NCBI GenBank assembly: GCA_044892525.1
Contig: CM097888.1
Span: 32,302,001-32,366,000 of the forward strand
Origin: Schmidtea polychroa
Taxonomy: Eukaryota
Direction of reading: 5' to 3'
DNA length: 64,000 nucleotides
The stretch's first letter is position 1. Every line of letters begins with the position of its first letter. Made by a program: the position numbers and the translations under genes. The notes beneath the pieces are model-generated. The model did not search any database. It was not told where the DNA came from and saw only the letters and a list, made by a program, of their open reading frames with translations. Positions 1 through 58,789 of this stretch are shown here, piece by piece.

Positions 1-1
1 A

Positions 2-2806
2 ACCGCATTACTTGATACAGGATCCAAAATAACCACACAAGACCACGATCGGAAAAACGCACTACATCATGCTATCGAAGGGAAACGTACCGAAGCGTTC
101 ACGTCGCTGATGGAACTACTATCATATGAGGACAATCGAGAAGTCGGAAACATGTATGGTGGATTACTAACAGCGACCAAAGAAAAACTGACAACAATTA
201 CCGGAATATTAATTACATGGAGAAATCCAATTAAAAATGATTATATGATCAACGTAAACGAAGCGTTCACGAGAGGAGAGAACACGCTGATGAGAGAAGC
301 TATGAAAGGACATCATTTATTCGAAATCCCGAATCAATTACTGGAACGAGGAATAACCTTCACAAATCATAAGGATGAGCAGTTATTAAAAAAGCGAATT
401 GACACATTCGAAAAATCAATATTCCAATTCATTACTCAGGTACGAAATAAATATTGGGGAACGGTAAGTGTGTTATACATGATGGACACGATGAACAACA
501 TCCGCGAGAATTACCTAGATATTATTCAAATACTTACCGCAGAGGAACGAATCAATAATCCAACTGGAAAGAAGATAAAAATAAAACATGGGATACCAAC
601 AGAACCAAAGTCGCAAACAAACCAAACGGTCACAAATAACGTCACCGAAACCAAATCAATGAGTATAGATCAAAGAGCAATAATATGCAAAGCGAAAGAA
701 GTGTTCTTTGAGGAAATGCTAAAGTTGTCCGACGAAATAATATTGTCCAAAATAATAAAAGCCGTACACACATACGCAAGAGATCAAACCACGGGTTTAG
801 ATATCGGGAAAATCAAAACCTTTTTACCTAGAGCATTTACGATGGTAAAAAAGGATTCCAGAACACCTCTGCAACAAGCAATACTAGCAGCGAAAGAAAA
901 TAGAGCAATAACGATCATGAGAATCCTCAGAGATATGGGCGAAGAAACCAACACGAAAAATGAACAAGGCGAAACCGCCATGATGTATGCAGCTATAACG
1001 AAAATACACCCAAAAACACTCCACATCCTACATCAATCAGGATCGAGACTAGACGAAAAATCAAACGAAGGGAACTCCACATTGGACTGGGCAACCATAC
1101 AGCCAAACTTGGAAATTATCAGATTTATTTGCAAAAATGCGACAAAAGAGGAAGTTGAAAATATGTGCAAAAACACATCTCAATTTCAATGGAATACGGT
1201 ACGGAAAAATCTAGAAGCAATGAAACTATTATTGACATGGAGAGTACCACAAAGTAATAAATATGCGATAAATATAAACGAATTTTACGAAAACGGAGAA
1301 AACGCGATGGTAAAGAATACCCTAACTAAAGGGGGGACGCCTAAAATTATCTTAATAGTATTAAATCGAGAGGACCTCAAATTCACGCAAAATCAAAACG
1401 AGCAACAACGAATTGGAAAACATCGTCGTATTCAATTGAGAGAATTAGTCAAGGAATGGAATAGAAAGAGACATGCCGCAACGGGTAGAAAAGAATTTGA
1501 ATTCGAAGCAAAGTTAGCAAGGAACAGAGTGTTAACAGCATATCGCAAATTATTGAACGATATAAATGTCGAGGACGACATTTTAAACGACAGCGGGGGA
1601 GATAAACACGATGACAATGACGGAAAAGGCCGAAAAGAGGATAAAGGGAAAAGAGAACCGGAAGAGGATAAACCGGAAAACAAGGATTTGGATACGAAAA
1701 GAGAGGGAAACAGCCCGGGAACCAAGACCAAAGAGGAGGAAAAACCGAATAATGGAAAACAGAGGGTATGCCTACCTTTCACTAACAAAGAAATAGAGAC
1801 AAATATGATATTAATGATAATTATGCTTACCATGATAGAGTTAGTAACAGCTCATGGAGGGACGAGAACGATAAAAGAAACCAAAGAAGCGGAGAATCAA
1901 GATAGCAAAGAGGATGAACAAAAACAAGAAAAGAAAAAGCAAGCACAAGAGCAGCAGTGGGATTTAAAGGAAGAATGGGACCTAAAGGAAAGGTGCATAC
2001 TAGGAAGATGTATGTCTAGAGCGTATCAGAAATTAGTACTGATAAATGAGGACACAGAACCAATAACAGAGGTAAGAATACAAGAAGCATACAGAAATCG
2101 AGACGGGAAGAGAATAACGAACGTTAAAGGAAAAGAGGTGCACCTGGGAAAAGGAGGTGAAGTAGTAATAACGCAGCTCCAACCAAGAAAAGAGCACAAA
2201 GTCTGTATTTCAAGATTAGGACCAGGTGAGAGATGCCATCAATATGTGACGCAGCAGCAGCCGCCGAAAGAATACACGGTTTGTATCTGGAGGAACGAAT
2301 CAAAAAGAGAATGCCGACGATACCCGGGGAAAAGAGGAAAGAAAAGAAAAAACCACGACGAAAAGGACGAAGGAGGAAAGCACAAGAAAACCGGCGAGGA
2401 AGCTCAGGACAACTATGTTTCGGAGGAGGAGATGGAAAAAATACAAAAGATGGCAAAGGAGGGTATGAACGAGGAAATAGCAAGAATACGAGAGATGATG
2501 AAAGGGAATGACAAAAGAGGGAACGAGAAAAGTACAGAAGCAATATCAACATTAACAAACAAGGAAAAACCAGAGAGTATAAGCGTGAAGCAGATGATGT
2601 GGATCAGTGGGATAATAATAACAGGGGCATTCCTAATCATAACGGGGGGAACAATAAAAATAATTAAAGATAAACGACATCGCGGAGAACTAGAGATGAC
2701 CCGAATCAGAAATTTCCAACATCGAGTGAAACGACCAAGTGATATCAAACAAGAACAGTGGGTGGAGGCCTGGAACGCTCAGCGCCCTCCAAACTCACGT
2801 ATATAG
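2..2806 (+). CDS. Ankyrin-repeat protein with two hydrophobic segments (5'-partial, >934 aa)
   Basis: Frame is open from base 2 (TALLDTGSKITTQDHDRKNALHHAIEGKRTEAFTSLM, itself ankyrin-like), so the true start lies upstream of the window. Ankyrin repeats: DSRTPLQQAILAA, NEQGETAMMYAA, SNEGNSTLDWA. Hydrophobic segments NMILMIIMLTMIELVTAHGG and WISGIIITGAFLIITGG (followed by KIIKDKRHR). Confidence 0.8.
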   Translation, partial: TALLDTGSKITTQDHDRKNALHHAIEGKRTEAFTSLMELLSYEDNREVGNMYGGLLTATKEKLTTITGILITWRNPIKNDYMINVNEAFTRGENTLMREAMKGHHLFEIPNQLLERGITFTNHKDEQLLKKRIDTFEKSIFQFITQVRNKYWGTVSVLYMMDTMNNIRENYLDIIQILTAEERINNPTGKKIKIKHGIPTEPKSQTNQTVTNNVTETKSMSIDQRAIICKAKEVFFEEMLKLSDEIILSKIIKAVHTYARDQTTGLDIGKIKTFLPRAFTMVKKDSRTPLQQAILAAKENRAITIMRILRDMGEETNTKNEQGETAMMYAAITKIHPKTLHILHQSGSRLDEKSNEGNSTLDWATIQPNLEIIRFICKNATKEEVENMCKNTSQFQWNTVRKNLEAMKLLLTWRVPQSNKYAININEFYENGENAMVKNTLTKGGTPKIILIVLNREDLKFTQNQNEQQRIGKHRRIQLRELVKEWNRKRHAATGRKEFEFEAKLARNRVLTAYRKLLNDINVEDDILNDSGGDKHDDNDGKGRKEDKGKREPEEDKPENKDLDTKREGNSPGTKTKEEEKPNNGKQRVCLPFTNKEIETNMILMIIMLTMIELVTAHGGTRTIKETKEAENQDSKEDEQKQEKKKQAQEQQWDLKEEWDLKERCILGRCMSRAYQKLVLINEDTEPITEVRIQEAYRNRDGKRITNVKGKEVHLGKGGEVVITQLQPRKEHKVCISRLGPGERCHQYVTQQQPPKEYTVCIWRNESKRECRRYPGKRGKKRKNHDEKDEGGKHKKTGEEAQDNYVSEEEMEKIQKMAKEGMNEEIARIREMMKGNDKRGNEKSTEAISTLTNKEKPESISVKQMMWISGIIITGAFLIITGGTIKIIKDKRHRGELEMTRIRNFQHRVKRPSDIKQEQWVEAWNAQRPPNSRI

Positions 2807-2966
2807 AAAGGAATATGACTGTATATAATTGTAAAAAGTAAGTATATCTTATGTATATAACAGTACTATATCTTTATATAAGCGCGGTATCAATATTATA
2901 CAATAACGGGAATCATAAAATAAAATTAACTTTAAATAAGAGTTGAAAAGTGTATATAAATTAAGA

Positions 2967-3326
2967 ATGGATCAAGGAAATAACGAAATGAACCACAATA
3001 CAGTAACTGAAGAATTATGGAAGCAACAATGTGCCGTATTAGCACAATTAGTGTCCAATTTGCAAGAACAGGGATTGACGATGCACAGAAACCTAATCGA
3101 GAGTATGAATAGAGGATTTAGTTATTTGAAGATAATTGAAGACCAGAGGTTAAAAATCGAACAAATGCAAAGAGAGATAGAGAGGATAACCCAATATAGC
3201 CGTAGACAGGAAATTGAACTAGACAGAATGATGGAGGAAGCAGAACAGACAGAAATAGAAGACTGGTCAGAATGGCTAATGAATAGAGAGGAGAGCGGAC
3301 ACGAAGCCGACTCTTCCGAACCCTAA
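2967..3326 (+). CDS. Small coiled-coil protein with acidic C-terminus
   Basis: The ORF track starts at TTG 2943; the first ATG is at 2967, directly after ttaag. Heptad-like stretch KIIEDQRLKIEQMQREIERITQ. Confidence 0.6.
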   Translation: MDQGNNEMNHNTVTEELWKQQCAVLAQLVSNLQEQGLTMHRNLIESMNRGFSYLKIIEDQRLKIEQMQREIERITQYSRRQEIELDRMMEEAEQTEIEDWSEWLMNREESGHEADSSEP

Positions 3327-3411
3327 ACCAAACCTAGCTTAAAATGTAAATAATTGTAAATAAAATATCGAACCTGTATCGATAAGAACTATAAGTATAT
3401 ATAATTATAGA

Positions 3412-4800
3412 ATGGATAAACGACAAAGAGAAGAGTTCAGAGAGATTGTCGAACAAGTCAGAAAATCTACAACGATCCGAACACACAAACATGTTATGTG
3501 CGGGATATGTGAAAAGTTGTTAAAGGAACCTCACCAAACCCAATGTGGATGCAGAGTATGTAAAGAATGTATCAGTGAAGCAATAAAGAATAGACCACAG
3601 TGGTGCCTGGTGTGTAAAGAGACACTAATATCGAGTTTAGAAGACACTAACGAGGATAAAGCCGCAGTGAAAGACATGTTAAACACCAATCTGGGATGTA
3701 AAAATACCCCATGCGAATGGAAAGGAATAATATGGAAAGTAGTGCAACATATGGGAGAATGTATGTACAGAATCGGCCAGTGTGAAAGGTGCCATAAAAC
3801 CATTCAAGCAAGCGAAGAAAAAGAGCATCAAAGACAGTGTGAAGAGAGATTAGAAAGATGTGAACATTGTGGAGAAATAGATACGTGGAGAAATCTCACC
3901 ATCAAACATCACAATGTCCAAGAGGAGAGAGTATGTGCAGAGTTCAGTGGGGAATGCCCAAACGGATGTAACCAAGGGGAAATAATAAAGGTGGCACAGC
4001 ATCTAAGGGAATGTGAAAAGAAAAGAATGACATGTGTACTAGGTAAATGGGGTTGTCAGAAACTACTACACCGAGGGGAGTTACCACATCATTTAGTAGA
4101 AAATGCTTCAACCCACGCAGAAATGTGGTCGACTGCGTTACAAGAAAGCGAAGAGAAAGTAAAACAAATGGAGATAGAGATAACATCGTTGAAAGTGTTA
4201 GTCAAAGAACTACTAGAAGAAAGGGAAGCGTTCGAAGAAGCCCGAGCAAACATAAAGATGCAAATAAACCGAATAGAAATCAGTAATAATCAGGCCAAGG
4301 AGCTACATCAGAAAATACGGGAAATAAATCTAAATGAGATAACCCCAACAGCACCCTACATATGGAAAATAACGGGAGTAAAAGAAAGAATACGAAAAGC
4401 AAAAACCGGAGAAGAGACAAGAATAACAAGTCCTGCATTCCATTCTTGGAAAAATGGGTACAAAATGAAAATGAAGATATATCCCAACGGGGACGGAACC
4501 GGATTAGATACACACTTTTCGATTTTCTTTCTGTTATGTAAAGGGGAATACGACGAAATAATAGAGTGGCCGTTCCAGGCAAAAATCGATATTGCACTAA
4601 TGAATGACCGAAGCATCCACGAACAAAGCTTCAAGACAACTGGAAACCAAATGTGTTACCAGAGACCTACGGAAGAAGAAGGATCAGCAACAGGAGCACC
4701 TACGTTCATCCTACAACAAAAAGTAGAAGATATGGCAAGAAATGACACGGTGTATATCAAGATGACCGTGAGGAAAGAGGAGAAGGGTAGAACGGAGTAA
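3412..4800 (+). CDS. TRAF: TNF receptor-associated factor (TRAF2/3/5-like): RING, TRAF zinc fingers, coiled coil, MATH domain
   Basis: RING CGICEKLLKEPHQTQCGCRVCKEC...WCLVC; serial TRAF-type Cys/His fingers; coiled coil; MATH motifs YIWKI, SPAFHSWKNGYKMKMKIYPNGDGTGLDTHFSIFF, WPFQAKI. Single uninterrupted ORF. Confidence 0.95.
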   Translation: MDKRQREEFREIVEQVRKSTTIRTHKHVMCGICEKLLKEPHQTQCGCRVCKECISEAIKNRPQWCLVCKETLISSLEDTNEDKAAVKDMLNTNLGCKNTPCEWKGIIWKVVQHMGECMYRIGQCERCHKTIQASEEKEHQRQCEERLERCEHCGEIDTWRNLTIKHHNVQEERVCAEFSGECPNGCNQGEIIKVAQHLRECEKKRMTCVLGKWGCQKLLHRGELPHHLVENASTHAEMWSTALQESEEKVKQMEIEITSLKVLVKELLEEREAFEEARANIKMQINRIEISNNQAKELHQKIREINLNEITPTAPYIWKITGVKERIRKAKTGEETRITSPAFHSWKNGYKMKMKIYPNGDGTGLDTHFSIFFLLCKGEYDEIIEWPFQAKIDIALMNDRSIHEQSFKTTGNQMCYQRPTEEEGSATGAPTFILQQKVEDMARNDTVYIKMTVRKEEKGRTE

Positions 4801-4993
4801 CCAATCGAATAATGTTGTATATAATAATCTGTATATATCGGTGTATATAACCAATAAAATATTATATAATAATAGTATGAAAACCCTAAATACGAAAACC
4901 CAAAAATGATGCGAAAATTTCCAAAGAAACAGTAAATAATGAATAAATTCCTTTTTCATAATAAAAAGATTAATCGATGTCTATGATTTAGAG

Positions 4994-6049
4994 ATGACAC
5001 AAGAGAAACTAACCGAAACTGCGATAGCCCCAACCAATGTCAACAAGACACAAATTCCCCGAGAACATAACAAAAAATGGAACAAAGTAATGTTCCAACT
5101 AACTAATCTCACCCGAAATCACATCGAAGAAGCTAGAGAGGATGAGAATAGTCAATACCAATGGTTAATACACAACTTAAGAGCGGAAGCAGAAGCATGC
5201 AAAAGAGCATCAAAATGGGCGTCACTAGAAAATACCCGCCAAGAAGCGCACAGCCACTACTTAAAGCAGCTAGTGCAGGAAGCGAGAAAGAGACTTACCG
5301 ATGAGAACACCAAGCGCGAAGCGGAAAAGCAAATAGAAGGAAGGAAAATGATGCACTTAGTGGCAGAAGCGAGAAAATGGAAAAGACAAAACAGTGAAAT
5401 GAAAAAAGAGATGAAAGAATTGCCCATGAGACTCGGATATGAAAGCGAACAAGGTAAATGGGAGGAGAATTTAATAATAAAGGAAGAATTGAAACGGTTG
5501 AGAAAGGTCGCCGCCCGAAGTCAAACCTGGCAAACAAAGGCTATGGAGTTTGAGCGACATTTGGCAATAAAATGCGACATAAGAGAGCACGAGAATGCCG
5601 CAATGGAAGAGATGATAACCCAACAAGCAGGACGGGTTGTGGAATTAGTAAATCAGGTAGAAGAGATGAAAAGAGACCTTAATGGATTACAAGGATCGCT
5701 GGAACAAAGAAACATGGTCCTAGCTGGAAAAAACAGAAAATTAGAAAACGAAAGGAAAATGTACACCGAAAATATCAAAAACTTGGAAATAGAAATTGAA
5801 AAATGGAAGGGCGACGAGAAAATCAAGGCCCTAGATAGACAAATAGAGATGAAAGACGAAGAGACAAGGTACCTCACCTACCTGCTCGACGAGGAGCTGA
5901 ACATCACTCGAGCTCTAAGAGACGAAATTAATGAGTTGAGAGCCCAAATTCCCCAATATTACCTACCATACGACCCTATTGCGATACAGTTACATCCCGC
6001 GGTCGATAGTGATGAAGGTTATGTAGGCCAGGAGGAAACCTTCGTATAA
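4994..6049 (+). CDS. Coiled-coil protein, 351 aa, unknown function
   Basis: Long ORF with the same codon bias as its neighbours, E/K/R/L-rich heptads, tail PQYYLPYDP...DSDEGY. Confidence 0.7.
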   Translation: MTQEKLTETAIAPTNVNKTQIPREHNKKWNKVMFQLTNLTRNHIEEAREDENSQYQWLIHNLRAEAEACKRASKWASLENTRQEAHSHYLKQLVQEARKRLTDENTKREAEKQIEGRKMMHLVAEARKWKRQNSEMKKEMKELPMRLGYESEQGKWEENLIIKEELKRLRKVAARSQTWQTKAMEFERHLAIKCDIREHENAAMEEMITQQAGRVVELVNQVEEMKRDLNGLQGSLEQRNMVLAGKNRKLENERKMYTENIKNLEIEIEKWKGDEKIKALDRQIEMKDEETRYLTYLLDEELNITRALRDEINELRAQIPQYYLPYDPIAIQLHPAVDSDEGYVGQEETFV

Positions 6050-6217
6050 GGGTGGATAAAAAGATAAAAAACAAAAAACCGGGACGTATATCCCAAACAA
6101 AAAAATTAAAGTATTGTAAAAGTATCCAAGGGACTGTAACCCAAACTATTAAATTTTATATAAATGTATACGTATAAGTCGCACTATAGCGCACCATTAA
6201 CTGTACATATTATAGAT

Positions 6218-6919
6218 ATGAAAATCGAGGAAATAATAGAAATTATGAGCGACGTAGAAGAAGGAGAGATCGAAGCAGAAACAACAGAAACACAAACGCT
6301 AAAGACAGAGTTACGGGAAGAGAAGTATGAAAACGGGAGATTAATAAACAAATACCTGGAAGACCGTAAAATGATAAAGGTGTTAAAGAAAGAGTGTGAA
6401 GCGTTGGGGAAAATAAAAAGAGAAACGGAAGAGGAAAACGAATGGCTTCAGGAACAAAGGAAGCGAGGAAAAAACTGGGAAAAGATAGCGGGAGAATTAT
6501 GGAAAGAAAGAGCAAGCCTTAAAGCAGAAGAAGTAATTGAGGATTATTGGAAAGGTGAGGCGAAGGAACGCCAAACAGCAATAAATAAATTAAAACAACA
6601 ACTGGAAGAAAACCAACGGGAAAGTAAAGAAATGAGGAAGTGGATCCACAAATATAGAGAGATAGAAAGAGAACATCAACAACAAAATTACCGGCAAGAA
6701 AACGAACAAGACTTCCTACAAATTGAACTAAAAAGAAACCTTGAAAAGAAAAAGGAAGAAATTAGACGCTTGAAAAAAGAAATCAGACATCTAAGGAGAG
6801 AAAACCGTGAAAAAGACCGACAGTTAGCAATGCTACCTGAGTTGAGATATAGGGTCATTAAGGCAGAGACCACCCTAATGAGAATCACCGAAAACGATCC
6901 CCAAAAGAAAGACGATTAA
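6218..6919 (+). CDS. Coiled-coil protein, unknown function
   Basis: The ORF track gives 6164; ATG 6218 after tattatag is preferred by analogy with neighbouring starts. Charged heptad-rich sequence. Confidence 0.65.
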   Translation: MKIEEIIEIMSDVEEGEIEAETTETQTLKTELREEKYENGRLINKYLEDRKMIKVLKKECEALGKIKRETEEENEWLQEQRKRGKNWEKIAGELWKERASLKAEEVIEDYWKGEAKERQTAINKLKQQLEENQRESKEMRKWIHKYREIEREHQQQNYRQENEQDFLQIELKRNLEKKKEEIRRLKKEIRHLRRENREKDRQLAMLPELRYRVIKAETTLMRITENDPQKKDD

Positions 6920-6955
6920 CAAAAGAACGTCGACAATTGTAAATAAATTAAATGT

Positions 6956-7600
6956 TTGATGTATAACAGTATAATGCGGTGGGGAGTGACAATCACCTTG
7001 ATAATACTGGCTAACAATCTGATGAGCAAGCCACAGAGTAACCCCCAAATAAATAGCCTCCGAGATCACCGAAGAAAGAACTCGAAAACCCAATCCGAAT
7101 CACCTAAACCGAGATGCCATACCATGGTAAAGAGCAAAATCATAGACAACATCCGTTCAACCCGAACCTACATCGACAATATCCGAGTAATGTGCCAAGG
7201 AAACCTCCTGTGTAGAAAAATAAATAAGGTGATGATAGAACAAATCCATCACCTAGATCAACTAGAAGTGCAAATACGACAGGAAAATTCCGAACCTGAA
7301 AAAATCGAAAAATCCCCAGAACAAGGCGACACCCACTACCTTCTATATGTGGTGATCGCCGAAACAAGCCTATTATGTCTAATAACCTTCTTAGAAATCC
7401 TCGAATTCAAGAAAAAATGCCAACAACCGAAATCCAAAGCTACCCAGAAAAATTCGGTCGAACTTTCCAACATCACTCAAAATACAAGTCCACTCAGATT
7501 AACCCACCAAGAATCTCCCAAACCATCAACCAGTCGTCCGGCCTACTACAACATCGAGCCTAAAATGTACCAACAACCCCAGTCAGAGTCAGCAGAGTAA
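6956..7600 (+). CDS. Putative type I membrane protein (signal peptide, Cys-containing ectodomain, TM, Tyr-containing tail)
   Basis: N-terminal MRWGVTITLIILANNLMS (ATG 6974); TM YLLYVVIAETSLLCLITFLEIL followed by KKKC; tail PAYYNIEPKMYQQP. Confidence 0.6.
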   Translation: MMYNSIMRWGVTITLIILANNLMSKPQSNPQINSLRDHRRKNSKTQSESPKPRCHTMVKSKIIDNIRSTRTYIDNIRVMCQGNLLCRKINKVMIEQIHHLDQLEVQIRQENSEPEKIEKSPEQGDTHYLLYVVIAETSLLCLITFLEILEFKKKCQQPKSKATQKNSVELSNITQNTSPLRLTHQESPKPSTSRPAYYNIEPKMYQQPQSESAE

Positions 7601-10573: not shown

Positions 10574-11341
10574 ATGATACCAACTACCAAACCTGCGTTA
10601 CGTCCATGCTTCTCTTGTGCGGATAAAAACGCCATCATCAAAGATCTGCAAACCCAGATTGGACGGTACAAAAGGAAGATAGATGAGCTAGAAGGGACAT
10701 GGTTTAGTCCCGCTCGGATGAAAGAGATCCAAAAGAAGCTCGATCGTAGCGAACATTGCCGGGACGCGCTAATATCTGAGAGCCGTGCCCAAAGAAGTCT
10801 CATCAAAGAACAGTCAGAGGCACTGCACAAAGTCTACGTGCAGGCGACTACAACCCGGAAAATAGTGCAGATTCCTATGAGAGAGGCCGATAACATCTTT
10901 CCGCCTCATCACAACCCTTCCTCGAATCCATCTCCGCCGTTCAAGAGACCGTGTCGAGACTGCGTGGAAACCGAACTTTCACCTGGGCGACCGGACGTTG
11001 TCCTCACGAGTACTAGCAAGACTTCAGCTGCTAACATCTCTATACCCACTGCGCTTCAAACCACCACAACTACGAGCAAACCCAAGCGCAAACAATTATC
11101 GCGTGCGGAACGAAAGCGGAGGCAGCGTGAGCGTGCGTCCACCAAGCCAAGCCTCCTATCAATAGAAGACTCTACTGGCGGTGGTAGTTCTCGAATGTCC
11201 ATCGACTTGACAATAGGGGCCCCAGCGCGCATCATCTCGGCGGCTGGCGTGACATGGGAGGAAAATGCCTCCGAATTCTTTGATCTGGACGAGTTGCTCG
11301 CCGACACCGAATGGGAACATGAGATTCATGAAGTCCGTTAG
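10574..11341 (+). CDS. 255-aa protein: RPCxxC motif x2, coiled coil, basic NLS-like patch, acidic C-terminus
   Basis: GC-richer ORF preceded by tttatag; RPCFSC and RPCRDC; KPKRKQLSRAERKRRQRER; EFFDLDELLADTEWE. Confidence 0.65.
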   Translation: MIPTTKPALRPCFSCADKNAIIKDLQTQIGRYKRKIDELEGTWFSPARMKEIQKKLDRSEHCRDALISESRAQRSLIKEQSEALHKVYVQATTTRKIVQIPMREADNIFPPHHNPSSNPSPPFKRPCRDCVETELSPGRPDVVLTSTSKTSAANISIPTALQTTTTTSKPKRKQLSRAERKRRQRERASTKPSLLSIEDSTGGGSSRMSIDLTIGAPARIISAAGVTWEENASEFFDLDELLADTEWEHEIHEVR

Positions 11342-11574
11342 GAAGTCGTATCGCATTTATTGTGACATTTCTTTTTCTCCACGAATACTCGTGATGTGTA
11401 CGATTAACTCCTTGTGTATTAATATTGAATACTAATAAATTTCGTCGTTTACTTACTTCCGTTTATAAACTGTCAGATTTTAATTAAATAAGTTGAATAT
11501 AGCGTCTTCGAGAGTTAACGAATAATCCCCGATTTATCCTCGTGAAATTCTGGCAACCGGTGATGTAATGCAAT

Positions 11575-11843
11575 GGACGTAAGCCCTTCTATCGGCAGTC
11601 AGGAATGGAAAGTCGAGGCCTCAGCAAGGAGTAGTTTTAAGGCAGAAGCTCACCTGCTTGCTGGCGTCTCGCCTGCATAGTGCAGTACCAACGTGAAGTA
11701 ATTCACGGGCACTATGCTGGAGGAAAGTTATGTGGGGTTTCACTCCGGGTTGACAAAGCGGCGGCACATTTTATTCGAGATGGACAATCAACCCTTAGAC
11801 CAGACAATATGGTAGAGTAGTCAGCCGAGGTGTAACCCCAACA
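11575..11843 (+). ncRNA. Structured RNA motif, copy A (GGAC...CCTTCTA block, AGTACCAA-bulged stem, terminal stem, ends CCCCAACA)
   Basis: GCATAGTGC 11675-83 pairs with GCACTATGC 11709-17; bulge AGTACCAA; hairpin CGTGAA-GTAA-TTCACG. Blocks shared with copies at 34.8, 43.6 and 52.5 kb. Confidence 0.6.
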
Positions 11844-12071
11844 CTAATAATAATAATATTAATAATAAATAATAATAAAAAATATAATTACCGCCATAAA
11901 CCGAAATTTTATAAAAAATATATAAAATGAGATATATGGCCACCAATGTTTTATATAGTATTTATTTTAACAACAAAAATCAAAAAAATCAGAGAATTAT
12001 TTCTTTATTTTAAATAACAAATCACTTTTAAGATCATCGAATCTCTAATTAACGATTTACAGTCATTTATT

Positions 12072-12253
12072 NNNNNNNNNNNNNNNNNNNNNNNNNNNNN
12101 NNNNNNNNNNNNNNNNNNNNNNNNNNNNNNNNNNNNNNNNNNNNNNNNNNNNNNNNNNNNNNNNNNNNNNNNNNNNNNNNNNNNNNNNNNNNNNNNNNNN
12201 NNNNNNNNNNNNNNNNNNNNNNNNNNNNNNNNNNNNNNNNNNNNNNNNNNNNN
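12072..12253. other. Assembly gap (N run)
   Basis: Run of N. Confidence 1.
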
Positions 12254-14897: not shown

Positions 14898-15097
14898 GGG
14901 TAAACTGAAATATCCCCCCAAATTGTATTTTAATTGATTTTTAATATATTATATATATAGTCAGAGTTTGAGCAATATGAGCAATACCCTTGCGAGCCGG
15001 GACAGAATATCTTGTCGGATAAACTCTGACTATATATATAATATATTAAAAATCAATTAAAATACAATTTGGGGGGGGGGAATACTTCAGTTTACCC
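14898..15097. mobile_element. 200-bp MITE with long TIRs and 8-bp TSD (hAT-like)
   Basis: Arms GGGTAAACTGAA...GTCAGAGTT and their reverse complement (about 80 bp each); AAATTTAT duplicated at 14890-97 and 15098-105. Confidence 0.85.
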
Positions 15098-20245: not shown

Positions 20246-22099
20246 CGAGTTAATTAGCAATTCAAATTATTATTATTAAAACAAAGAAATAAAGAAATGC
20301 ATTTAAAATATTAAGCAATAAATCTTTAAATAAATGATGTGGTAGTAAAAAAAGAGTAACTATCGAGAACTAATAGCTGAAACTGATAAGCTTTTGAATA
20401 AGCTTTTGAATATTCCAGTTTTGTCGTAAACTCAAATTCAAATATATATAAGAATAATCTTAAATTTTGGTAACAATTTTACTTACAAATTTTTACATTA
20501 AGAAAGATACAGAAATGTACGCTTGTTTCTGATAATATTCTAATTTATTTATATTGCTAATTTTAAAATTGATATTAATAATTTTGTGATAAAATTTTTG
20601 TCTCAAGTGCCTGGTTCGTTGTTGGTGTGATTTAATTTTCCTCGTCGCAAACGTACTGTTTTGACATCTTGGCACCAGTTGTGAAGGTGGTAGAAGTGAG
20701 TAAGAGACTAATTCTATTCTTAGAACTTACAACTGTCCCTATCCTATCCTCATTCAAATCTTATTGAGTTTTTCCAGTTCCTCATTATAGAAATAAAAAT
20801 TTTATACTAATAAATGTTGAAATATATTGCTCAAATTTAATTGATGACTCAACTTTCACTGAAGATTCTTATGTAGATAAATAATGATAAGAGTAGTAAA
20901 AATTAAAATTATTCATTCAATATCAAAAATTACCAAGTAACAACCAATTCTTTCAGTTCATTAATTTGATCGGTAATTATTGCCGAAATTTTAAAATAGA
21001 TGGTTGTTATGTCGTTGTTATTTGTGTATCGGTTATATTATTCGTGTTCAAAACGTTGTGTAGAACGTTCATGTTTGTACAATTTTATTAACCCTTTTCA
21101 GCTCATGTTAGAAAGGTCGTTTTCTTTTGGAATAATTTTTGGGCGAATTGACTGGGTTTAGCATGCGTAATTATACTTATTTTTAATTCTAAATAATTTT
21201 TTTACCTGCTAAAAAATAGATATTTACTAATCATTATCTTGTTCACCCGCTTAAAATTATTATTTTTATATTATGTGTTATTAATGGTGTTTATTAATGG
21301 TGTTATTAAGGATATATATCTTATAGTCAAAAATATTTTCATTAAATACATTATTCGCAGCAAAAGGCTTAAATTATCACTTTATTGTTTTAAATAATAA
21401 ATGTTGCTACCAAGAAATCATCACTTTATGTTTTATACACATGAAATATTTTATAGCCAGACTTCAAATGGTCTTGTCCGTTTGGTTTCTGTCGCCATAA
21501 TATTATAAAACTATGACCCTGGGCACAAGTTCGATGATGTTTTGATCATATTACTATTTCGTGTTTGAACAATTCAAAAGATGTTGAGTCTTACTCAATT
21601 TTGGCATTTGTATTTTTTTTAAATTCTTAAAGTTATTTTCAATGTTTATTTAATTTTTTATTCTTAATTTTATTTGCATTATTATTATTCTAATGTTTAT
21701 TTAATAAATATAAAGTTTTTCGAGTCTTTAAATGTATTTTTTTCAAAAATACCCCGTTGATATTTTCAATGTTTATTTAATTTTTTATTCTTAATTTTAT
21801 TTGCATTATTATTATTCTAATGTTTATTTAATAAATATAAAGTTTTTCGAGTCTTTAAATGTATTTTTTTCAAAAATACCCCGTTGATAGCGATATTTCG
21901 CTTAACCCGATCATATCCAAAGAGTATCCCCGCATTGAACGGGGGTTACCTGTATAGTAATTTTTAATTACTATTTTTATTTTAATTCTAATGTTAGTAA
22001 ATATTAATAATTTATTTTATATATTTTTCTAAAAATTCCTGGCTCCTAATGAACCCCAACATTATGCCACATTAAAAACTAAAATCGGTTTAATCAAAA

Positions 22100-27950: not shown

Positions 27951-30900
27951 ATGAGAAAATTAATTTTTATTTTTCTTATTTTCCATGTTCATATTTTTAC
28001 TTGCACAAAAATACCCAAGCTCTTACGATGCACTGATGAAACATGTGAAGATAGAATTTCAACTGGCAGAATTATTAAATCTGCAAATTCTAAATACGGA
28101 AATCTGGATGTTTTGAAGAGTTCATCTATGGTATATGTAAGAGGTAAAAACGTTGATTCACAAAATACCCTTTGGTTAGTAGAGCAAGAAGGATATTATG
28201 GATTCGTAGATCTTTCGTTCATAAAAGAAATAAAAAATACTGTAATTGAAGAATTGATGATTGTTCAAAATCCTTATGATACTAAAGTTGATGAAACTGA
28301 AGACAGTGATGATTCCACAAATAATGTGGGTTTGTTCTCAAACGAAAATGCCAAAAACACTGATTTACTCATGGAGAATGATGAAACAGAAAACTTCAGT
28401 GAGATGAATTCTACAATAAAATCTAATAAAGAAAATTCAGACAATATAAAAAATGCTGAAGTTATGAATAAGCTTCTAAATAATAATATAACTACTTTGA
28501 ATTCACAAAATAATGATAAATTAGAAACCAATAAGGCAAATATTAATGATAAAATTAATAAAGAAAACGCCAAAATAATTGAAAGTTCGAATTCAAACAA
28601 TGGTATTGTCAATTCAGTTAATATCCATAAAGAAGAAATATTAAATTCTAAAAAGGTTCAAGATCCCGCGAAGAAAGACAGCATTTCTCAAGATATAAAA
28701 TCAGAAGTCAACCATGTCAAAACTGTTGACGTTAATGATGGACAGAAGTCAGTTAAGAAAATTGATTCTAAAGAGAAATTGGAACCACCGAAAGTAGTAA
28801 AAGATGTTAAAGTTAATAATGCAAAAGAACAACCAATAGTTATAAATGATGATAAAGATGACAAATCAGGTGAGAAAAGGAATTTACCCAACATTAATCA
28901 ACAAAATAGTGATAAGCATACAAAAATTCCGGATAAAATCGTCGACAATAGCCTTCAGAATTCAGAAAACGATTCAAAATCCAAAATAAATACCAAGCTT
29001 TCTCAAAATCTTCCTGTGGGTAGTAAGGTGGAAATTGGATCGTTAGAGATCTCTCAGATCACAATTAAAAATGAAAAACAAGTTCCCGAAACCCAAAAAG
29101 TCGCAGAACAAGGTGAAAGTAAAAAAACTAAAATAATCGATTCTTCCAAAGTCAATCCAGAAAAGAAGGTAACTCGAAACTCGAAACCGATTGAAAATAT
29201 TGATATGAAACTAGAAAAGACTGAAAATGTTGAATCGCCTAATAGTTTAAAATTTGAAAAGCTACCAGGATCTCCACCAAATAATGCTGCAAGTGAAAAT
29301 CCGATAAAACAAATTCCATCGAAAATCAATTTATCAACAGAGAAGCCAAATATACAAGTAAAGTCGATCGAAAACAGTGAAAACTCGGATAATACCAAAA
29401 CTATCGATTTTCCCAATAGCTTAGAATCTGAAAAGCTGTTGAATAAAGTTGTCAATGAAAATCCCGATAAACAAATTACACCAAAAATTGATCCGATAGT
29501 GGAAAATTCAATTCCAAAAATTCAATTAAAATCCACCGATAACAGTAGCAACAAGCACTCCAATACATTAGAAAATTCTGGCGAATCAACTACTGAAAGC
29601 AAAATTTTACAAACAGCCAATGAAGAATTAATGAAGAAGAGAGACATGAAAAACATTCCAACAGAGCCTATTAAAACTTTAGAAAATAACTCAGAATATC
29701 CAGTTCATTCCAAATCAGATCAAAAATCATCAGAATCAGTAATTGATAATCTATATAGTAAAAATCAAAATATTCAATCGAATGAAAACAAAATTGATCA
29801 ATCACAGAAAATGACAGTTGAAATCAATAATTCCAAATCAGATCAAAAATTATCAGAATCAACAAATGAGAATCTGTCCAATAAAAATCAGAATATTCAA
29901 TCGAATGAAATCAATGAAAACAAAATTGACCAATCGCAGAAAAAGTCGGTTGAAATCGATAATTCCAAATCAGACCAAAAATCATCAGAATCCACAATTG
30001 AGAATCTGTCCAATAAAAATCAGAATATTCAATCGAATGAAATCAATGAAAACAAAATTGACCAATCGCAGAAAAAGTCGGTTGAAATCGATAATTCCAA
30101 ATCAGACCAAAAATCATCAGAATCCACAATTGAGAATCTGTCCAATAAAAATCAGAATATTCAATCGAATGAAATCAATGAAAACAAAATTGACCAATCG
30201 CAGAAAAAGTCGGTTGAAATCGATAATTCCAAATCAGACCAAAAATCATCAGAATCCACAATTGAGAATCTGTCCAATAAAAATCAGAATATTCAATCGA
30301 ATGAAATCAATGAAAACAAAATTGACCAATCGCAGAAAAAGTCGGTTGAAATCGATAATTCCAAATCAGACCAAAAATCATCAGAATCCACAATTGAGAA
30401 TCTGTCCAATAAAAATCAGAACATTCAATCGAAGGAAATCAATGAAAACAAAATTGATCAATCGCAGAAAAAGACAGTTGAAATCAATAATTCCAAATCA
30501 GATCAAAAATCATCAGAATCAACAAATGAGAATCTGTCCAATAAAAATCAGAACATTCAATCGAAGGAAATCAATGAAAACAAAATTGACCAATCGCAGA
30601 AAAAGTCGGCTGAAATCGATAATTCCAAATCAGTTCAAAAATCATCAGAATCAACAATTGAAAATCTGTCCAATAAAAATCAGAACATTCAATCAATAGA
30701 AATCAATGAAAGAAAAACTGATCAATCAGGAGAAAAATCACACGAAATCAATAATCAATCCCAATCGGATAATAATTTACCAACAAAAACTTTGGTCAAT
30801 GAAAAAGGAACCAATTCAAAATTGAAATTCGAGAATAATAATAATAATAAAAAGCAAATAAAACAAAGTTTATACAGTGAAAAATCGGTTAAATTAACGC

Positions 30901-32579
30901 GTGACATGCAAATTGCAAATGAAGGATCAATGAAAGGTGATCCTTGGTTGGATAACAGTGGGCGGCCGGTTCACGATATTCACGATACCGACACTCAAAT
31001 AAGGTCGCCGCTCATCAAGCTAATTATGAAAATCGATATCCTTTCACAACTCGGTATCAAATACGTCGCATCGAAACTCGGATTTGATTCATCCAGTAAA
31101 CTGAACCAATTCACCAATCATTGGTTGCAAATGCCGCTCGAAGGCTTCATTTCGATTTTCCTCCTCTTTTCAGTTATTTTCCTCACTGTCTATACGCCGA
31201 AACTATTGAAATTCAATCGGGACTGGAAAACGGAACTGATCCGCCAATCCCAGCTGTTGAAAGAGCTCGAACTGAAACAGCAAACCACCGAAGAAGTTCG
31301 TCACAAACTCACAGTGCAAAATCACAATTTCGAGAAAGTGATCGATGAATACAAACAGAAAATCAATGAGATCCAAGAGGATTCAGCGAAAAACAGAAAA
31401 ACCGTCATATTAGAAATTGAGAAGATCAAAAAATCCAATGAATCGAATGTAAAAAACCTGATGAATGATTTGGCCAATAAAAACCAACAATGCCAATTAT
31501 TGGAGAATGATGTGTTCAATAAAACAAATATCATCGAAAATCTCGAAGAAGACAAACGACAAATGGAATTGCAATTCGACGATGAGAAATCCCAGCTGGA
31601 AGTGGAGTTATCGGAAAATAAGCGAGAATTGAATCGGATTGGTTGTTTAAATGACCAATTGAAACAGTCATTCCAGCAGTTGTCAATGGAAACCGGGGAA
31701 TTGAAAGCGAGAATCGACGAATTAAACGAGGAAATCATCTCGAGAAATGACTCGTATTCTCAGCTGGAGAAATCATTTGAACATTTGAAAGTATTCGAAG
31801 GATTGAATTATGAAGAATTCAACGAGCGGAAATCGATATATTTGGATTTAACCCAAACGAAACAGCGATTGGAATCAACCGAACGAAACCTGGAACAATT
31901 GAACGAGACCTTGCAAATCAAGAGCGAATTAATCCAACAACTGGAACAGGAGAAAATCGATATGAAACAGACGGTAAATCGATACGAAATCGAGAAATCG
32001 CTGGCAATCCAGGAGAAAGAAGCGGCAGAAATGAAATTGCAGGTTTTGACGGAATATTTCAAATCGAAAGAAGTGGAAATGGCAAAAACGCTTGGCCACC
32101 AGGTGATCGAGAGCACCCAATCGATGGATCAATTGGATTTCCTGAAGCATCGAATCCGGAATTTGGAGTCGGAAAATGAGGAGCTGTCGAAATCCGGGCA
32201 GAAATTGAAATCGGAAATCAAAGAAGCTCAAACTTTCGCAACAAAGTGCAAAACCGAAGCCAATGAAGAGATCAATCGATTGTTTTTGAGAAATGTGAAT
32301 TTGGAGCGAAGTTTACAAACGGAAAAGGAGGAGAATAAGAAACTTCGTACGAAATTGTCGCATTATTGCGGGCCAACTCCACCTCGGAATCAGACAGCAA
32401 TTCCTTACAATCACAACAAAGATCGGCCGCCATCTAGACAGTCGGGAATCAGTGAGCCTGTTACGACATTTGTACCGTTATCATTCATACCATTCACTTC
32501 ACCTCAGTCACCCATTCCCAACACCAATCAGTTCTCCGGAAGGAATTCTGTTAATTCTAAAAAATCTAATAATACATGA
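27951..32579 (+). CDS. MIA3: TANGO1/MIA3-like ER exit-site cargo receptor
   Basis: Signal peptide; MIA-type SH3 (RCTDETC...VYVRGK...LWLVEQEGYYGFVD); long lumenal region; TM GFISIFLLFSVIFLTVY; coiled coils with KLQVLTEYFKSKE; Pro-rich tail. Confidence 0.88.
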   Translation: MRKLIFIFLIFHVHIFTCTKIPKLLRCTDETCEDRISTGRIIKSANSKYGNLDVLKSSSMVYVRGKNVDSQNTLWLVEQEGYYGFVDLSFIKEIKNTVIEELMIVQNPYDTKVDETEDSDDSTNNVGLFSNENAKNTDLLMENDETENFSEMNSTIKSNKENSDNIKNAEVMNKLLNNNITTLNSQNNDKLETNKANINDKINKENAKIIESSNSNNGIVNSVNIHKEEILNSKKVQDPAKKDSISQDIKSEVNHVKTVDVNDGQKSVKKIDSKEKLEPPKVVKDVKVNNAKEQPIVINDDKDDKSGEKRNLPNINQQNSDKHTKIPDKIVDNSLQNSENDSKSKINTKLSQNLPVGSKVEIGSLEISQITIKNEKQVPETQKVAEQGESKKTKIIDSSKVNPEKKVTRNSKPIENIDMKLEKTENVESPNSLKFEKLPGSPPNNAASENPIKQIPSKINLSTEKPNIQVKSIENSENSDNTKTIDFPNSLESEKLLNKVVNENPDKQITPKIDPIVENSIPKIQLKSTDNSSNKHSNTLENSGESTTESKILQTANEELMKKRDMKNIPTEPIKTLENNSEYPVHSKSDQKSSESVIDNLYSKNQNIQSNENKIDQSQKMTVEINNSKSDQKLSESTNENLSNKNQNIQSNEINENKIDQSQKKSVEIDNSKSDQKSSESTIENLSNKNQNIQSNEINENKIDQSQKKSVEIDNSKSDQKSSESTIENLSNKNQNIQSNEINENKIDQSQKKSVEIDNSKSDQKSSESTIENLSNKNQNIQSNEINENKIDQSQKKSVEIDNSKSDQKSSESTIENLSNKNQNIQSKEINENKIDQSQKKTVEINNSKSDQKSSESTNENLSNKNQNIQSKEINENKIDQSQKKSAEIDNSKSVQKSSESTIENLSNKNQNIQSIEINERKTDQSGEKSHEINNQSQSDNNLPTKTLVNEKGTNSKLKFENNNNNKKQIKQSLYSEKSVKLTRDMQIANEGSMKGDPWLDNSGRPVHDIHDTDTQIRSPLIKLIMKIDILSQLGIKYVASKLGFDSSSKLNQFTNHWLQMPLEGFISIFLLFSVIFLTVYTPKLLKFNRDWKTELIRQSQLLKELELKQQTTEEVRHKLTVQNHNFEKVIDEYKQKINEIQEDSAKNRKTVILEIEKIKKSNESNVKNLMNDLANKNQQCQLLENDVFNKTNIIENLEEDKRQMELQFDDEKSQLEVELSENKRELNRIGCLNDQLKQSFQQLSMETGELKARIDELNEEIISRNDSYSQLEKSFEHLKVFEGLNYEEFNERKSIYLDLTQTKQRLESTERNLEQLNETLQIKSELIQQLEQEKIDMKQTVNRYEIEKSLAIQEKEAAEMKLQVLTEYFKSKEVEMAKTLGHQVIESTQSMDQLDFLKHRIRNLESENEELSKSGQKLKSEIKEAQTFATKCKTEANEEINRLFLRNVNLERSLQTEKEENKKLRTKLSHYCGPTPPRNQTAIPYNHNKDRPPSRQSGISEPVTTFVPLSFIPFTSPQSPIPNTNQFSGRNSVNSKKSNNT
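29710..30750 (+). repeat. Coding tandem repeat, 132 bp (44 aa) x8, within TANGO1
   Basis: KSDQKSSESTIENLSNKNQNIQSNEINENKIDQSQKKSVEIDNS units; central copies near-identical. Confidence 0.95.
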
Positions 32580-34313: not shown

Positions 34314-34623
34314 GAAGGGTCCAGCAATGTCGTAAGTTGAAAATTAGAATGCAGAAAAACAATAAACTTTAAAATATTGGAGGAAAGTTCGATAATCTTA
34401 CTCAGAGATATATATTATTATGATTAAGCTAAAGCAGAAAGCTATTCAAATCATTAAATTGTTTTTGAAGGGTCCAGCAATGTCTTAAGTTGAAAATTAG
34501 AATGCAGAAAAACAATAAACTTTAAAATATTGGAGGAAAGTTCGATAATCTTACTCAGAGATATATATTATTATGATTAAGCTAAAGCAGAAAGCTATTC
34601 AAATCATTAAATTGTTTTTGAAG
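34314..34623. repeat. 153-bp tandem duplication
   Basis: GAAGGGTCCAGCAATGTC... at 34314 and 34467, nearly identical. Confidence 0.9.
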
Positions 34624-34740: not shown

Positions 34741-34951
34741 TGGGTTACAGATAACCAAAATTATTACTTTTGTGCTGTTTCCAGCGTAACCCAGAATGTA
34801 ATGCTTCCCTAATACACGACACCCGTTGAATGAACAACGTTGGTAATGTGTCCGATGGGCGAAATATAGTAAAAAGTGAGCTCACTCTGGTGAACTATAA
34901 TGAGCTAACATTTTTATGGGTCCATGGACTTTTTATGAAAGATATGTGTCC
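34741..34951 (-). ncRNA. Structured RNA motif, copy B
   Basis: Minus strand: GACAC-ATTACCAA-CGTTG(TTCATT)CAACG-G-GTGTC; TGGGTTAC-GCTG(GAAA)CAGC...GTAACCCA. Confidence 0.6.
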
Positions 34952-35912
34952 GATTTACTTCACGGTCCCTTCTATTGCTCAACGCTCAACGGAAAACATG
35001 AGAATGGTAGGAGAATCAGACTTACATGATTCATTTAAATTGTTATCATAAACGAAAACTAATTAATTATCTCAAGTTTATTCTGCTTGCGAATGGACTG
35101 CTGCATTTTTCCCACTTCAGACTAAAAGACCATAGCATTATTGACCAAATGTTTTAAATTAACCTGTTAAACAGGCATCAGAATTTCGTTAACGTTGTCA
35201 TCTAATTTGATTTATAATTTAACTACAATTTATTATCGTGTTTAAAAATTTTTTATATAACTTCTATTTCTATTATTCCGAGAAACTAAATTAATTTTGT
35301 TGACACAACAAATTGTTCATATTTATAAGACGGAAAACCTATTTATAACATTGCTGACTAAATTGCACCATGAAAATAGTACCCACCAATTTCCAAAAGT
35401 TTAATTGCACCAGCAACTATATCCCATAAAACGAACCACTGTATAAATTACTGATCTAACCAAACACATATCACCGATAAATCATCACAAATTAGTGTGA
35501 GATCAAGTAAATAAACCTTGTAAGTTAATCAACCAAAATTCAATTAATTCTTTGTCAATCTGACTTCAATGAAATAAACTACAATTCAGTTATTCTCCTA
35601 CGTTTCCCATTAGAAAATATAAACTACGCTAACACTAAAATATCTCTGAAAAACAAATCCAACTATTTACGATGTTACAGAATTTGCTTCTCTGTGTGAT
35701 TCATATACTTGTGCCAAATATGATGGTATAATGGGTTAGCTATTTGTTCTATTTTAACTATCTGCTAGATATCGGGTTTTGAAACTTACTCATTAATTAT
35801 TCGATTTAGTTGATTAAACTTGAAGTTTTATTGACACAAGGAAATCACAACGTTTTTTTAAATTCTATTTTTATCACAAAATCTGCATATTAAAACAAAT
35901 TTAATTATGCAA

Positions 35913-38714: not shown

Positions 38715-39406
38715 TATATTCGTGCTAGAGTAGACGCTGGCGCACGCGCTACTCCTTTGGCATTTCCCGACTCTGAATTCCTGGTACACTCCTTTGCAAT
38801 GTGGCCCTCTTCTGCACATAGCCAACACTTCTTTCCTTGTTTCTTGAAACAACGTTCTTCTAGATGGCCATTCTTTCCGCAATACGAGCATTTCTTTTTC
38901 TTGTCTTGTTTTCCAACGACAGCCGAACACAGTTCCATATTGTCACAGTTTACTAAGACACGAGACTGTTTCAAGACCTCAACAAGAGACATCTGCTGAA
39001 TATTGGCATTTGATCGTAACTGTTGTGATGACACTGCTGGCAAACCCATTATGAATGCGCTTTTAATTATGATTTCGTTATCTATCTTGGCCAGAGATGC
39101 TAAGTTTTTGAGATCATTCAAATAGACATCTACTGGCTCATTGCACCACCTTCGTTCACGGAATCGGTCATAAGCTTGGAACATATCGATCGAATAGACA
39201 TCGATTAAGGCATGTTCGATCTTCAATGCGTTGCCTTTGTCTTCTGTGCTCAAATGCTGATACACTGCAAAAGCTGGTCCATCTAGATATAAAGGAATTA
39301 TTGATTCCAACTCCACGATTCTTTGAATTTTTGCCACTAGCTTGACTTTCTGAATCCACTGTTGAACGTCACCTTCTCCATTGAAAATAGGTATCATCTT
39401 GTCCAT
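38714..39406 (-). CDS. gag: Gag with two CCHC zinc knuckles
   Basis: IPIFNGEGDVQQWI; CSYCGKNGHLEERC and CWLCAEEGHIAKEC. Confidence 0.93.
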   Translation of the reverse strand: MDKMIPIFNGEGDVQQWIQKVKLVAKIQRIVELESIIPLYLDGPAFAVYQHLSTEDKGNALKIEHALIDVYSIDMFQAYDRFRERRWCNEPVDVYLNDLKNLASLAKIDNEIIIKSAFIMGLPAVSSQQLRSNANIQQMSLVEVLKQSRVLVNCDNMELCSAVVGKQDKKKKCSYCGKNGHLEERCFKKQGKKCWLCAEEGHIAKECTRNSESGNAKGVARAPASTLARI

Positions 39407-43458: not shown

Positions 43459-43672
43459 TGGGTCGCAGGTAATCTACATTTTACCAGTTCGTGTCGTTTC
43501 CGACGTAGCCCCAGTTACAGTGACTTGATTAACCATCCGACACACTTTGACCTATCAATGTTGGTAAAGTATCACATGGATTATTACTCGCGAGAAGTCA
43601 GAGTACCTTTTTACACTATAATCGTAGAGCATTAGAATGGGTTCGAGGACAGCCGATAGAAGGCGTATGCCC
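43459..43672 (-). ncRNA. Structured RNA motif, copy C
   Basis: Minus strand: GATAC-TTTACCAA-CATTGA(TAGG)TCAAAG-T-GTGTC; GTCG(GAAA)CGAC; GCCTTCTATCGGC block as in copy A. Confidence 0.55.
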
Positions 43673-44159
43673 TTCTTTACCTAGGTACTCTTATGCTATG
43701 GTACAATGCCGTGAGCATACTCCCTTATGGCTTCTCCCCCATGTTATAGTGTAAGCCGATAATATCCCACCAGAATTATTTTTCCCATATACCCGAATTA
43801 GACACGAGAATAAACTACATATAAATTTATTATAATTTACACACAACACTAAAATACCGTAATCCAAAACCGCATCGTTCATCATTCACGCAATCACGAT
43901 TTTCCTTTACAAATCAAATAACCAACAAAATTATCTATTCCTGAAACGTTATCTAGAAGGACAGCTTCGAACTGCGTAGTCGTCCACGTTTCAGAGGGTG
44001 TTTCTCACGTCTCAATTAAACCGTAATCAAAGTTTCTACCTGTTGATTCGGCCAGGTCCTTCTGCCACATAGATGTTCGCCGTCGGTATTGGAAATGATT
44101 CCTAGTTCAATTTTTTCTTCGACACGTCATACCTTGCGATTGCGAGATTGATTTCGTTA

Positions 44160-58710: not shown

Positions 58711-58789
58711 ATTCAATTTTATGATATATTAAATGATAAGAACATGAATACTTATAAAAAGCTTTTTATATCGTAAAATTTGATTAGAT

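Follow-up and report, generated by a model that had tools for sequence, protein, structure and literature searches.

Four G+C-rich islands in a 64-kb stretch of AT-rich DNA (the whole stretch analysed, referred to as the window) were found to be members of one non-coding RNA family that is kept by selection on its fold, a conclusion that we regard as secure. The original prediction had placed islands sharing ordered sequence blocks at 11.6, 34.8, 43.6 and 52.5 kb, and all four, designated copies A, B, C and D, were indeed present there with the listed blocks (Table 1). The copies measure about 240-295 nt (n=4) and have a G+C content of 38-51% (38% in copy B) compared with about 25-30% (~27%) in the background. 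They span 41 kb in both orientations and have the same 5′ and 3′ limits. By covariance model copy A covers 11552-11796, and its own 3′ domain extends to 11845. Homology continues weakly for 40-60 nt 3′ of copies B, C and D, while the flanks further downstream and the upstream flanks of the four copies were unrelated. Neither a shared flanking ORF nor, within 150 nt upstream of each copy, a shared promoter-like motif was found, and scanning the 64-kb window with the four-copy covariance model, and also with a model of B, C and D, returned no fifth copy. All six frames carry stops in each of the four copies, leaving no ORF; a protein-coding exon was rejected on these stops and because tblastx gave no signal outside the copies.

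Table 1. Positions of the RNA copies, their predicted domains and other features of the window.
Feature	Copy	Position	Strand	Remarks
Whole copy	A	11552-11845	+	Most divergent member, with an enlarged 3′ domain of its own
Whole copy	B	34974-34730	-	Partly decayed member
Whole copy	C	43695-43447	-	Extent by covariance model; leave-one-out nhmmer E 1.2e-15
Whole copy	D	52444-52690	+	Best-formed member, 52/54 pairs formed
5′ hairpin	D	52463-52490	+	GGAC...GTC with inner CC/GG stem and 7-nt loop TTCTAAC; helices 2, 3
5′ hairpin	A	11574-11602	+	
5′ hairpin	C	43646-43673	-	
5′ hairpin	B	34925-34952	-	Degenerate
Long hairpin	D	52502-52553	+	TTATAGT and GCTCAC blocks; helices 5, 6
Long hairpin	A	11615-11670	+	
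Long hairpin	B	34861-34913	-	
Long hairpin	C	43582-43634	-	
Stem-bulge hairpin	D	52557-52601	+	Lower stem, 8-nt bulge AGTACCAA (52567-52574), upper hairpin, one unpaired G
Stem-bulge hairpin	A	11674-11717	+	
Stem-bulge hairpin	B	34814-34857	-	
Stem-bulge hairpin	C	43534-43578	-	
3′ domain	D	52623-52675	+	GGGTTAC...GTAACCC enclosing GCTG-GAAA-CAGC and an A/U-rich stretch; helix 9
3′ domain	B	34742-34792	-	
3′ domain	C	43460-43511	-	Hairpin is GTCG-GAAA-CGAC
Enlarged 3′ domain	A	11734-11839	+	Predicted in A's own MFE folds; closed by GGGGTTTCAC/GTGTAACCCC, inner GGGTTGA/TCAACCC
(AAT)n-type repeat	A	11846-11885	+	Directly 3′ of the copy
ORF255		10574-11341	+	Intact 255-aa ORF, candidate protein partner of copy A
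LTR retrotransposon		35819-39521	-	Compact, 3.7 kb
Likely Mutator-like element		57295-60775		
MULE transposase fragment (ORF)		59701-60261		PF10551, E 3e-9
Long imperfect inverted repeats		57295-57423/58578-58706		Around the MULE fragment
Long imperfect inverted repeats		58795-58961/60492-60775		Around the MULE fragment
Six co-oriented ORFs		1-7600	+	Short spacers; A-rich strand (AT skew ~0.4)
1542-aa ORF		27951-32579	+	No Pfam family
Eight tandem 132-nt (44-aa) repeats		29628-30851		Within the 1542-aa ORF
490-aa ORF		53763-55235	+	1.1 kb downstream of copy D
44-nt perfect inverted repeats		23442-23485/27110-27153		3.6 kb apart
Perfect 56-nt palindrome		14914-15076		51-nt spacer
Tandem duplication		34314-34619		153 nt x2, 99% identical; just 3′ of copy B
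Tandem duplication		21634-21887		127 nt x2, 100%
Tandem units		49093-50029		~117 nt x4-5
Tandem units		56186-56340		31 nt x4-5
69-nt direct repeat pair		47482-47550/55781-55849		71% identity, 8.3 kb apart
N runs		12072-12253, 50049-50243, 50897-51077, 56549-56723		175-195 nt each; one ~230 nt downstream of copy A

The consensus fold was predicted by RNAalifold on copies B, C and D alone, which yielded 54 pairs, and a covariance model of only these three copies (R1), with copy A held out, was scanned against the window with filters off. R1 recovered the held-out copy A at full length with 32.7 bits (rough E 1.3e-8), and its best unrelated match in the window scored 14.9 bits. A sequence-only model of the same alignment (R2) gave copy A 8.4 bits (E 0.076), which indicates that about 24 bits of the score of copy A come from base pairing. 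The pairing of copy A was thus predicted by a model that had not seen it. The four-way alignment was fitted to the model and, with only four sequences, offers weak covariation statistics; within it, 88.9% of cells form standard pairs, compared with 33-38% when the partners are slid by 1-3 columns, and both sides have changed in 31 of the 54 modelled pairs. None of 500 shuffles reached any of five pairing measures, and an independent MAFFT alignment yielded the same main helices. Standard pairs are formed at 43/47 positions in copy A (pairs with letters on both sides), 47/54 in copy C and 52/54 in copy D, and 10/53 pairs are broken in copy B. The compensatory change around an invariant unpaired motif that had been proposed originally is therefore borne out by the double-sided changes and by the scores of the held-out copy, and the suggested covariance-model check gave a positive answer both in the recovery of copy A and in the proportion of paired cells.

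The strand asymmetry of the family was then considered. Among the four copies 17 G-U pairs were counted vs 6 A-C mismatches, and the fold z-scores of copies A, B and D were -2.5 to -2.6 on one strand but -0.4 to -1.7 on the reverse complement (for the MFE of copy D, -2.5 vs -0.6). This G-U excess, together with z-scores that favour one strand, fixes the sense strand of the RNA, with A and D on the + and B and C on the - strand. Since 81-96% of the pairs are intact at 40-66% sequence identity, which is beyond what neutral decay would leave, selection on the RNA itself can be taken as secure.

At the sequence level the copies are far less alike. In the structural alignment, B, C and D are 57-66% identical to one another and A is 40-48% identical to each of them, and blastn detected a single pair (B-D, 75% over 118 nt). 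With leave-one-out nhmmer profiles, E values of 1e-15 to 1e-28 were obtained for B, C and D, and copy A was not recovered by the same sequence-only procedure (E 0.83). Taken with the recovery of copy A by structure and the lack of any ORF, these profiles uphold the earlier view that the copies are homologous and non-coding. The hexamer TACCAA alone occurs in the window at chance frequency (42 observed vs 42.3 expected), while the composite pattern of CCTTCTAWCGGNWGTC, a gap of 70-95 nt and TACCAACRT matched three copies and gave 0 matches in 100 shuffles. Chance is thus excluded for the composite of blocks, not for TACCAA by itself. Pattern scans for outside relatives returned 0 matches and 13 chance matches in metagenome contigs, 11 chance matches in bacterial and archaeal genomes and 0 in viral contigs; none of the 24 chance loci from the metagenome, bacterial and archaeal scans fitted the covariance model. 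A full-text literature search on the bulge motif brought up primer noise only.

The RNA is predicted to be a string of four hairpin domains. In the first, the 5′ hairpin, the 7-nt loop reads TTCTAnC; in the second, the long hairpin, both sides have changed in 14/19 pairs of helices 5 and 6, and copy C has TCTGAC in place of the GCTCAC of the other copies. The third domain consists of a lower and an upper stem (helices 7 and 8), in which 94% and 92% of cells are paired and 8/15 pairs are double-changed, around a TACCAAC bulge that is invariant in 4/4 copies. The lower and upper stems, the 8-nt bulge ending in TACCAA and the single unpaired base were all correct as quoted in the original prediction; the upper stem of copy C contains one A-A mismatch. 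A linker of ~20 nt leads to the 3′ domain, where the four-pair GAAA-loop hairpin covaries among B, C and D (GCTG/CAGC vs GTCG/CGAC). The two changes of copy C in the GGGTTAC/GTAACCC closing stem are not compensatory, and the 3′ domain may be closed either by GGGTTAC/GTAACCC or by GGGTT pairing with the 5′ AACCC block. Copy A lacks a 5′ AACCC-type block, yet its own 3′ domain is predicted to be closed by a comparable stem of greater length. Pairing of the extended flanks into a terminal stem was inconsistent between copies and was discarded. Blocks are lost in some copies, as had been noted: B is without the CCTTCTAnCGG hairpin, and A without the GAACCC block and the GAAA hairpin. Several motifs recall known signals, a likeness to which we attach no importance in the interpretation. 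The bulge presumably resembles the yeast branch-point consensus (6/7 positions), a GTAA(A/T)(G/T) block near the 5′ end is taken by us as similar to a 5′ splice site, copy B has what we assume to be a Sm-site-like AATTTTGG, and the GGGTTA and TAACCC blocks each presumably correspond to one telomere-type repeat unit.

Comparison with catalogued RNAs gave no assignment. At the gathering score, the whole window had 0 matches to Rfam 15 (4227 models, including hammerhead, HDV-like, twister, pistol, hatchet, snRNAs, SRP, RNase P/MRP, Y, vault and snoRNAs), and at E up to 10 the sense strand of the copies was still unmatched; sub-threshold noise resembling C/D snoRNAs and bacterial sRNAs was confined to the 3′ edges of B, C and D or the sequence past them, with none on A. 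ARAGORN found no tRNA or tmRNA in the window. These searches agree with the original statement that the elements do not fit hammerhead, HDV, twister, tRNA or snoRNA, and, together with the fold, with the proposal of a structured RNA outside the catalogued families. In B and D the conserved GCTCAC-TTTTT block contains a T5 run, which argues against transcription by RNA polymerase III, and T4 runs lie inside A. A tRNA or tRNA-derived SINE was accordingly rejected, as ARAGORN returned no cloverleaf and internal T5/T4 runs are present.

The copies were also compared with the main classes of mobile DNA. The best direct repeats flanking the four copies are 9-12 nt and fall within the shuffle range, so that no target-site duplications were detected, although old retroposed copies could have lost them. 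End-to-end inverted alignment did not exceed the shuffled mean in 4/4 copies, and a MITE or DNA transposon was rejected for want of terminal inverted repeats. An LTR or solo LTR was dismissed on the ground that the 97-nt LTRs of the resident element are unrelated to the family; copies B and C were likewise rejected as an LTR pair, being direct but 57% identical and having the TFIIF-alpha gene between them. A role as primer for the resident LTR element was discarded too, the complementarity to its 5′ leader and to the stretch before its 3′ LTR being no more than in shuffles. The ORFs near the copies are ORF255 (no family), the LTR gag and pol, TFIIF-alpha and a zinc-finger ORF; a Pfam search of the neighbouring ORFs showed no adjacent RuvC-type nuclease, and an omega RNA (TnpB, Fanzor, IscB) was set aside. 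No non-LTR-type reverse transcriptase was found in the window. Common limits of the copies, as originally sought, were found, but no autonomous partner with a non-LTR reverse transcriptase in the window. Membership in a mobile-element family, also part of the original prediction, was not confirmed, as target-site duplications, terminal inverted repeats, LTR features, a shared flanking ORF and flank homology were all lacking. Directly 3′ of copy A lies an (AAT)n-type repeat, and B, C and D have no such tail; (AAT)n-like repeats are common throughout the window.

The resident LTR retrotransposon has direct repeats of 99 nt that are 100% identical, with the LTR proper read as 97 nt (TG...CA), and is flanked by a 5-bp duplication, AGTTT. 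Its 5′ LTR is separated from the gag start by ~16 nt, and a TGG-starting tRNA-type primer site was not seen. Its gag ORF, with a zinc knuckle, and its 1005-aa pol ORF are both uninterrupted; the two lie in different frames and overlap. Pol comprises protease, RT, DUF7047 and integrase; a literature search on DUF7047 returned nothing. Among its 791 homologues, identity was 43-54% for the 120 listed, and most lie on 3.6-4.5 kb metagenome contigs, that is, of element size, with some on contigs up to 730 kb. The long ORFs of the window are of a eukaryotic type, and no ORF of the window was present in the protein collection searched. Elsewhere in the window, the first 7600 nt differ in composition from the rest and encode, among other products, an 898-aa ankyrin protein and a RING+MATH (TRAF-like) protein. 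In the 1542-aa ORF the inner copies of the tandem repeat are 90-93% identical to the reference copy. The 490-aa ORF has four CxxC...H...H zinc-finger-like repeats and sub-threshold Pfam matches only (zf-C17orf113, zf-WIZ). The 44-nt inverted repeats are possibly DNA transposon ends, and the 69-nt direct repeat pair may be a diverged dispersed element.

A candidate partner lies next to copy A. ORF255 ends 210 nt upstream of copy A in the same orientation, is G+C-rich, and contains a coiled-coil module and an arginine-rich stretch; it has no Pfam family. The spacer between the two is as AT-rich as the background, so that ORF255 and copy A may merely be neighbours. A full HMMER search detected ten weak homologues of a ~95-aa module of ORF255 (E 1.6e-8 to 8e-4; UniParc entries UPI0006...). 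In 8/10 of these the module stands beside Pfam domains of unrelated host proteins, namely SNF transporter, glycine-cleavage P protein, ribosomal L21, CRAL-TRIO, actin, subtilase, DAD and tyrosine phosphatase, and one of these partners being an SLC6-type transporter, the hosts look animal-like. Fusion of the module to unrelated host proteins in other genomes suggests a mobile ORF; the simplest reading of the homologues is a mobile ORF fused to its neighbours by gene predictors, and ORF255 is probably an undescribed mobile-element protein. The family has in common a coiled-coil region, a P/S/T-rich linker and an arginine-rich stretch, which in one homologue gave a sub-threshold Pfam match to the REV family that we take to reflect composition only. 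The coiled-coil and arginine-rich make-up would suit the binding of bulged RNA helices. No ORF255-like locus occurs elsewhere in the window, including remnants near or upstream of B, C and D, and no relatives were found in viral contigs or PDB. ORF255 and copy A may form a small unit whose protein binds its own 3′ RNA, in the manner of the R2 protein.

As the likeliest but still tentative interpretation, to which we give somewhat less than an even chance, the family may represent the cis-acting 3′ module of small retroelement-like units. Its mode of action would be that of the structured 3′ UTRs found in sequence-specific non-LTR retrotransposons, with an element-encoded protein binding the invariant bulge and loops and so marking the RNA as the element's own. 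Copy A would be a full unit of ORF255, 210-nt spacer, RNA module and (AAT)n tail, and B, C and D would be ORF-less copies from other lineages, B being in decay. Selection would act on element lineages, each copy being a recent snapshot and B an older one. An element context is favoured by the intact, co-oriented ORF255 upstream of copy A, by the (AAT)n tail and by the transposon-rich neighbourhood (the LTR element at 35819-39521 and the MULE at ~57-61 kb); separate element lineages would also be compatible with identities at 40-66%, with the exchanged 3′ domain and with the decay of one copy. There is a precedent in R2: its RNA has a structured 3′ UTR to which the R2 protein binds selectively (PMC11194090). 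The 3′ UTR modules of sequence-specific non-LTR elements (R2 3′ RNA; the 3′ stem-loops shared by 'stringent' LINE/SINE pairs) are multi-hairpin RNAs of a few hundred nt that stand at the 3′ end of the element transcript and are bound selectively by the element's own protein (PMC11194090). Like them, the present family keeps its fold with little identity between lineages, and copy A has an ORF upstream and a short simple repeat at its 3′ end. Short derivatives without ORFs exist for such modules as well. Unlike them, it is accompanied in the window by no ORF for a non-LTR reverse transcriptase or endonuclease, the neighbour being a 255-aa protein of unknown family; the four copies have no target-site duplications, B, C and D have neither tail nor ORF, and similarity to known modules was found neither in Rfam nor in sequence. 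Several observations count against an element module: target-site duplications are not above chance and B, C and D have no tail; the four copies have a common start, unlike random 5′-truncation; the window holds no non-LTR reverse transcriptase, and no ORF255 remnant lies near B, C and D; and no relative occurs in the metagenome, genome or viral contigs scanned.

Nearly as likely as the element module, and also possible rather than probable, is a local cluster of paralogous cellular ncRNA genes whose products would serve as RNP scaffolds, B being a pseudogene and each copy being held in place by selection, as in the Y and vault RNA gene clusters of vertebrates. Four copies within 41 kb, in both orientations and with the same limits, would agree with this arrangement, as would unrelated flanks and the absence of transposition hallmarks (target-site duplications and terminal inverted repeats), and Y and vault RNA loci and the nematode stem-bulge RNAs similarly comprise about four diverged paralogues within tens of kb in mixed orientation. 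The intact pairing of A, C and D at 40-60% identity would imply continued selection or a very recent origin, and insertion of elements next to RNA genes would be consistent with the transposons that lie less than 1 kb upstream of A and B. The conserved stem-bulge-stem of the Y RNA, vault RNA and stem-bulge RNA families is the likely protein-binding site, and copies A-D likewise keep stem, bulge and stem. However, they are two to three times longer than those RNAs, the internal T5 runs of B and D argue against polymerase III, no upstream motif common to the copies was found, and the Y RNA, vault and sbRNA models of Rfam, like the rest of its models even at E up to 10, did not match. A whole-domain difference such as that of copy A is, moreover, rare among paralogues of one cellular RNA.

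That the RNA cleaves itself or is catalytic in some other way, in an element or a gene context, appears improbable. On this account the TACCAAC bulge, the TTCTAnC loop, TTATAGT and GCTCAC would make up a putative active core, with the covarying stems and a contact of the GAAA tetraloop holding it in place. Unpaired blocks that do not vary, set between stems that covary freely, are a ribozyme pattern, and the GNRA-type loop and the T-loop-like 7-nt loop hint, from their letters, at tertiary packing; yet a protein-binding RNA would show the same conservation, the GAAA hairpin is missing in A and the loop motif in B, and the Rfam ribozyme models were unmatched. Retroelements carry hammerhead and HDV-like ribozymes, the former in Penelope-like elements and retrozymes and the latter in R2/RTE, and these share with our family invariant unpaired nucleotides, covarying helices and copies dispersed in transposon-rich DNA, but four serial hairpins with an 8-nt bulge fit none of their folds, and Rfam gave no match. 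The omega RNAs of TnpB, Fanzor and IscB are similar in being structured RNAs of ~200-300 nt that keep their fold while the sequence diverges fast; they are tied to transposons, whereas copies A-D have no adjacent RuvC-type nuclease ORF and did not match Rfam HEARO. Less probable still is a DNA-level element (a MITE, solo LTR or other repeat) with leftover palindromic pairing, or chance. The copies do sit amid repeats and transposons, and B-D is the only pair visible to blastn, but had the copies decayed neutrally to 40-66% identity, many more pairs should be broken than the 4-19% observed, the strand asymmetry in G-U over A-C and in z-scores points to RNA, the composite pattern was absent from 100 shuffles, and terminal inverted repeats, target-site duplications and similarity to the resident LTR were not found. 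A broader proposal, which we consider rather unlikely, is an undescribed compact multi-domain RNA class that would act as a new ribozyme or else as the RNA component of a new RNP. It would be recognised through the invariant 8-nt bulge and the T-loop-like hairpin, would be kept in several deeply diverged lineages of one eukaryotic genome and might pair with ORF255 as a new coiled-coil and arginine-rich protein family moving among unrelated host genes.

If the fold holds in a larger alignment, a ~250-nt structured RNA family of eukaryotes absent from Rfam would be added; this newness is judged against Rfam, and Dfam or Repbase may already list the family as a repeat with its structure unnoticed. 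Invariant unpaired blocks between covarying stems are usual in ribozymes or in RNAs bound by specific proteins. Should the family be the recognition module of a small element that has only a coiled-coil and arginine-rich protein, it would define a kind of non-autonomous retroelement not recognised before, together with a new pair of RNA and recognising protein, while a cellular gene cluster would provide a new RNP RNA. Under either reading, the covariance model is a direct handle for annotating the source genome.
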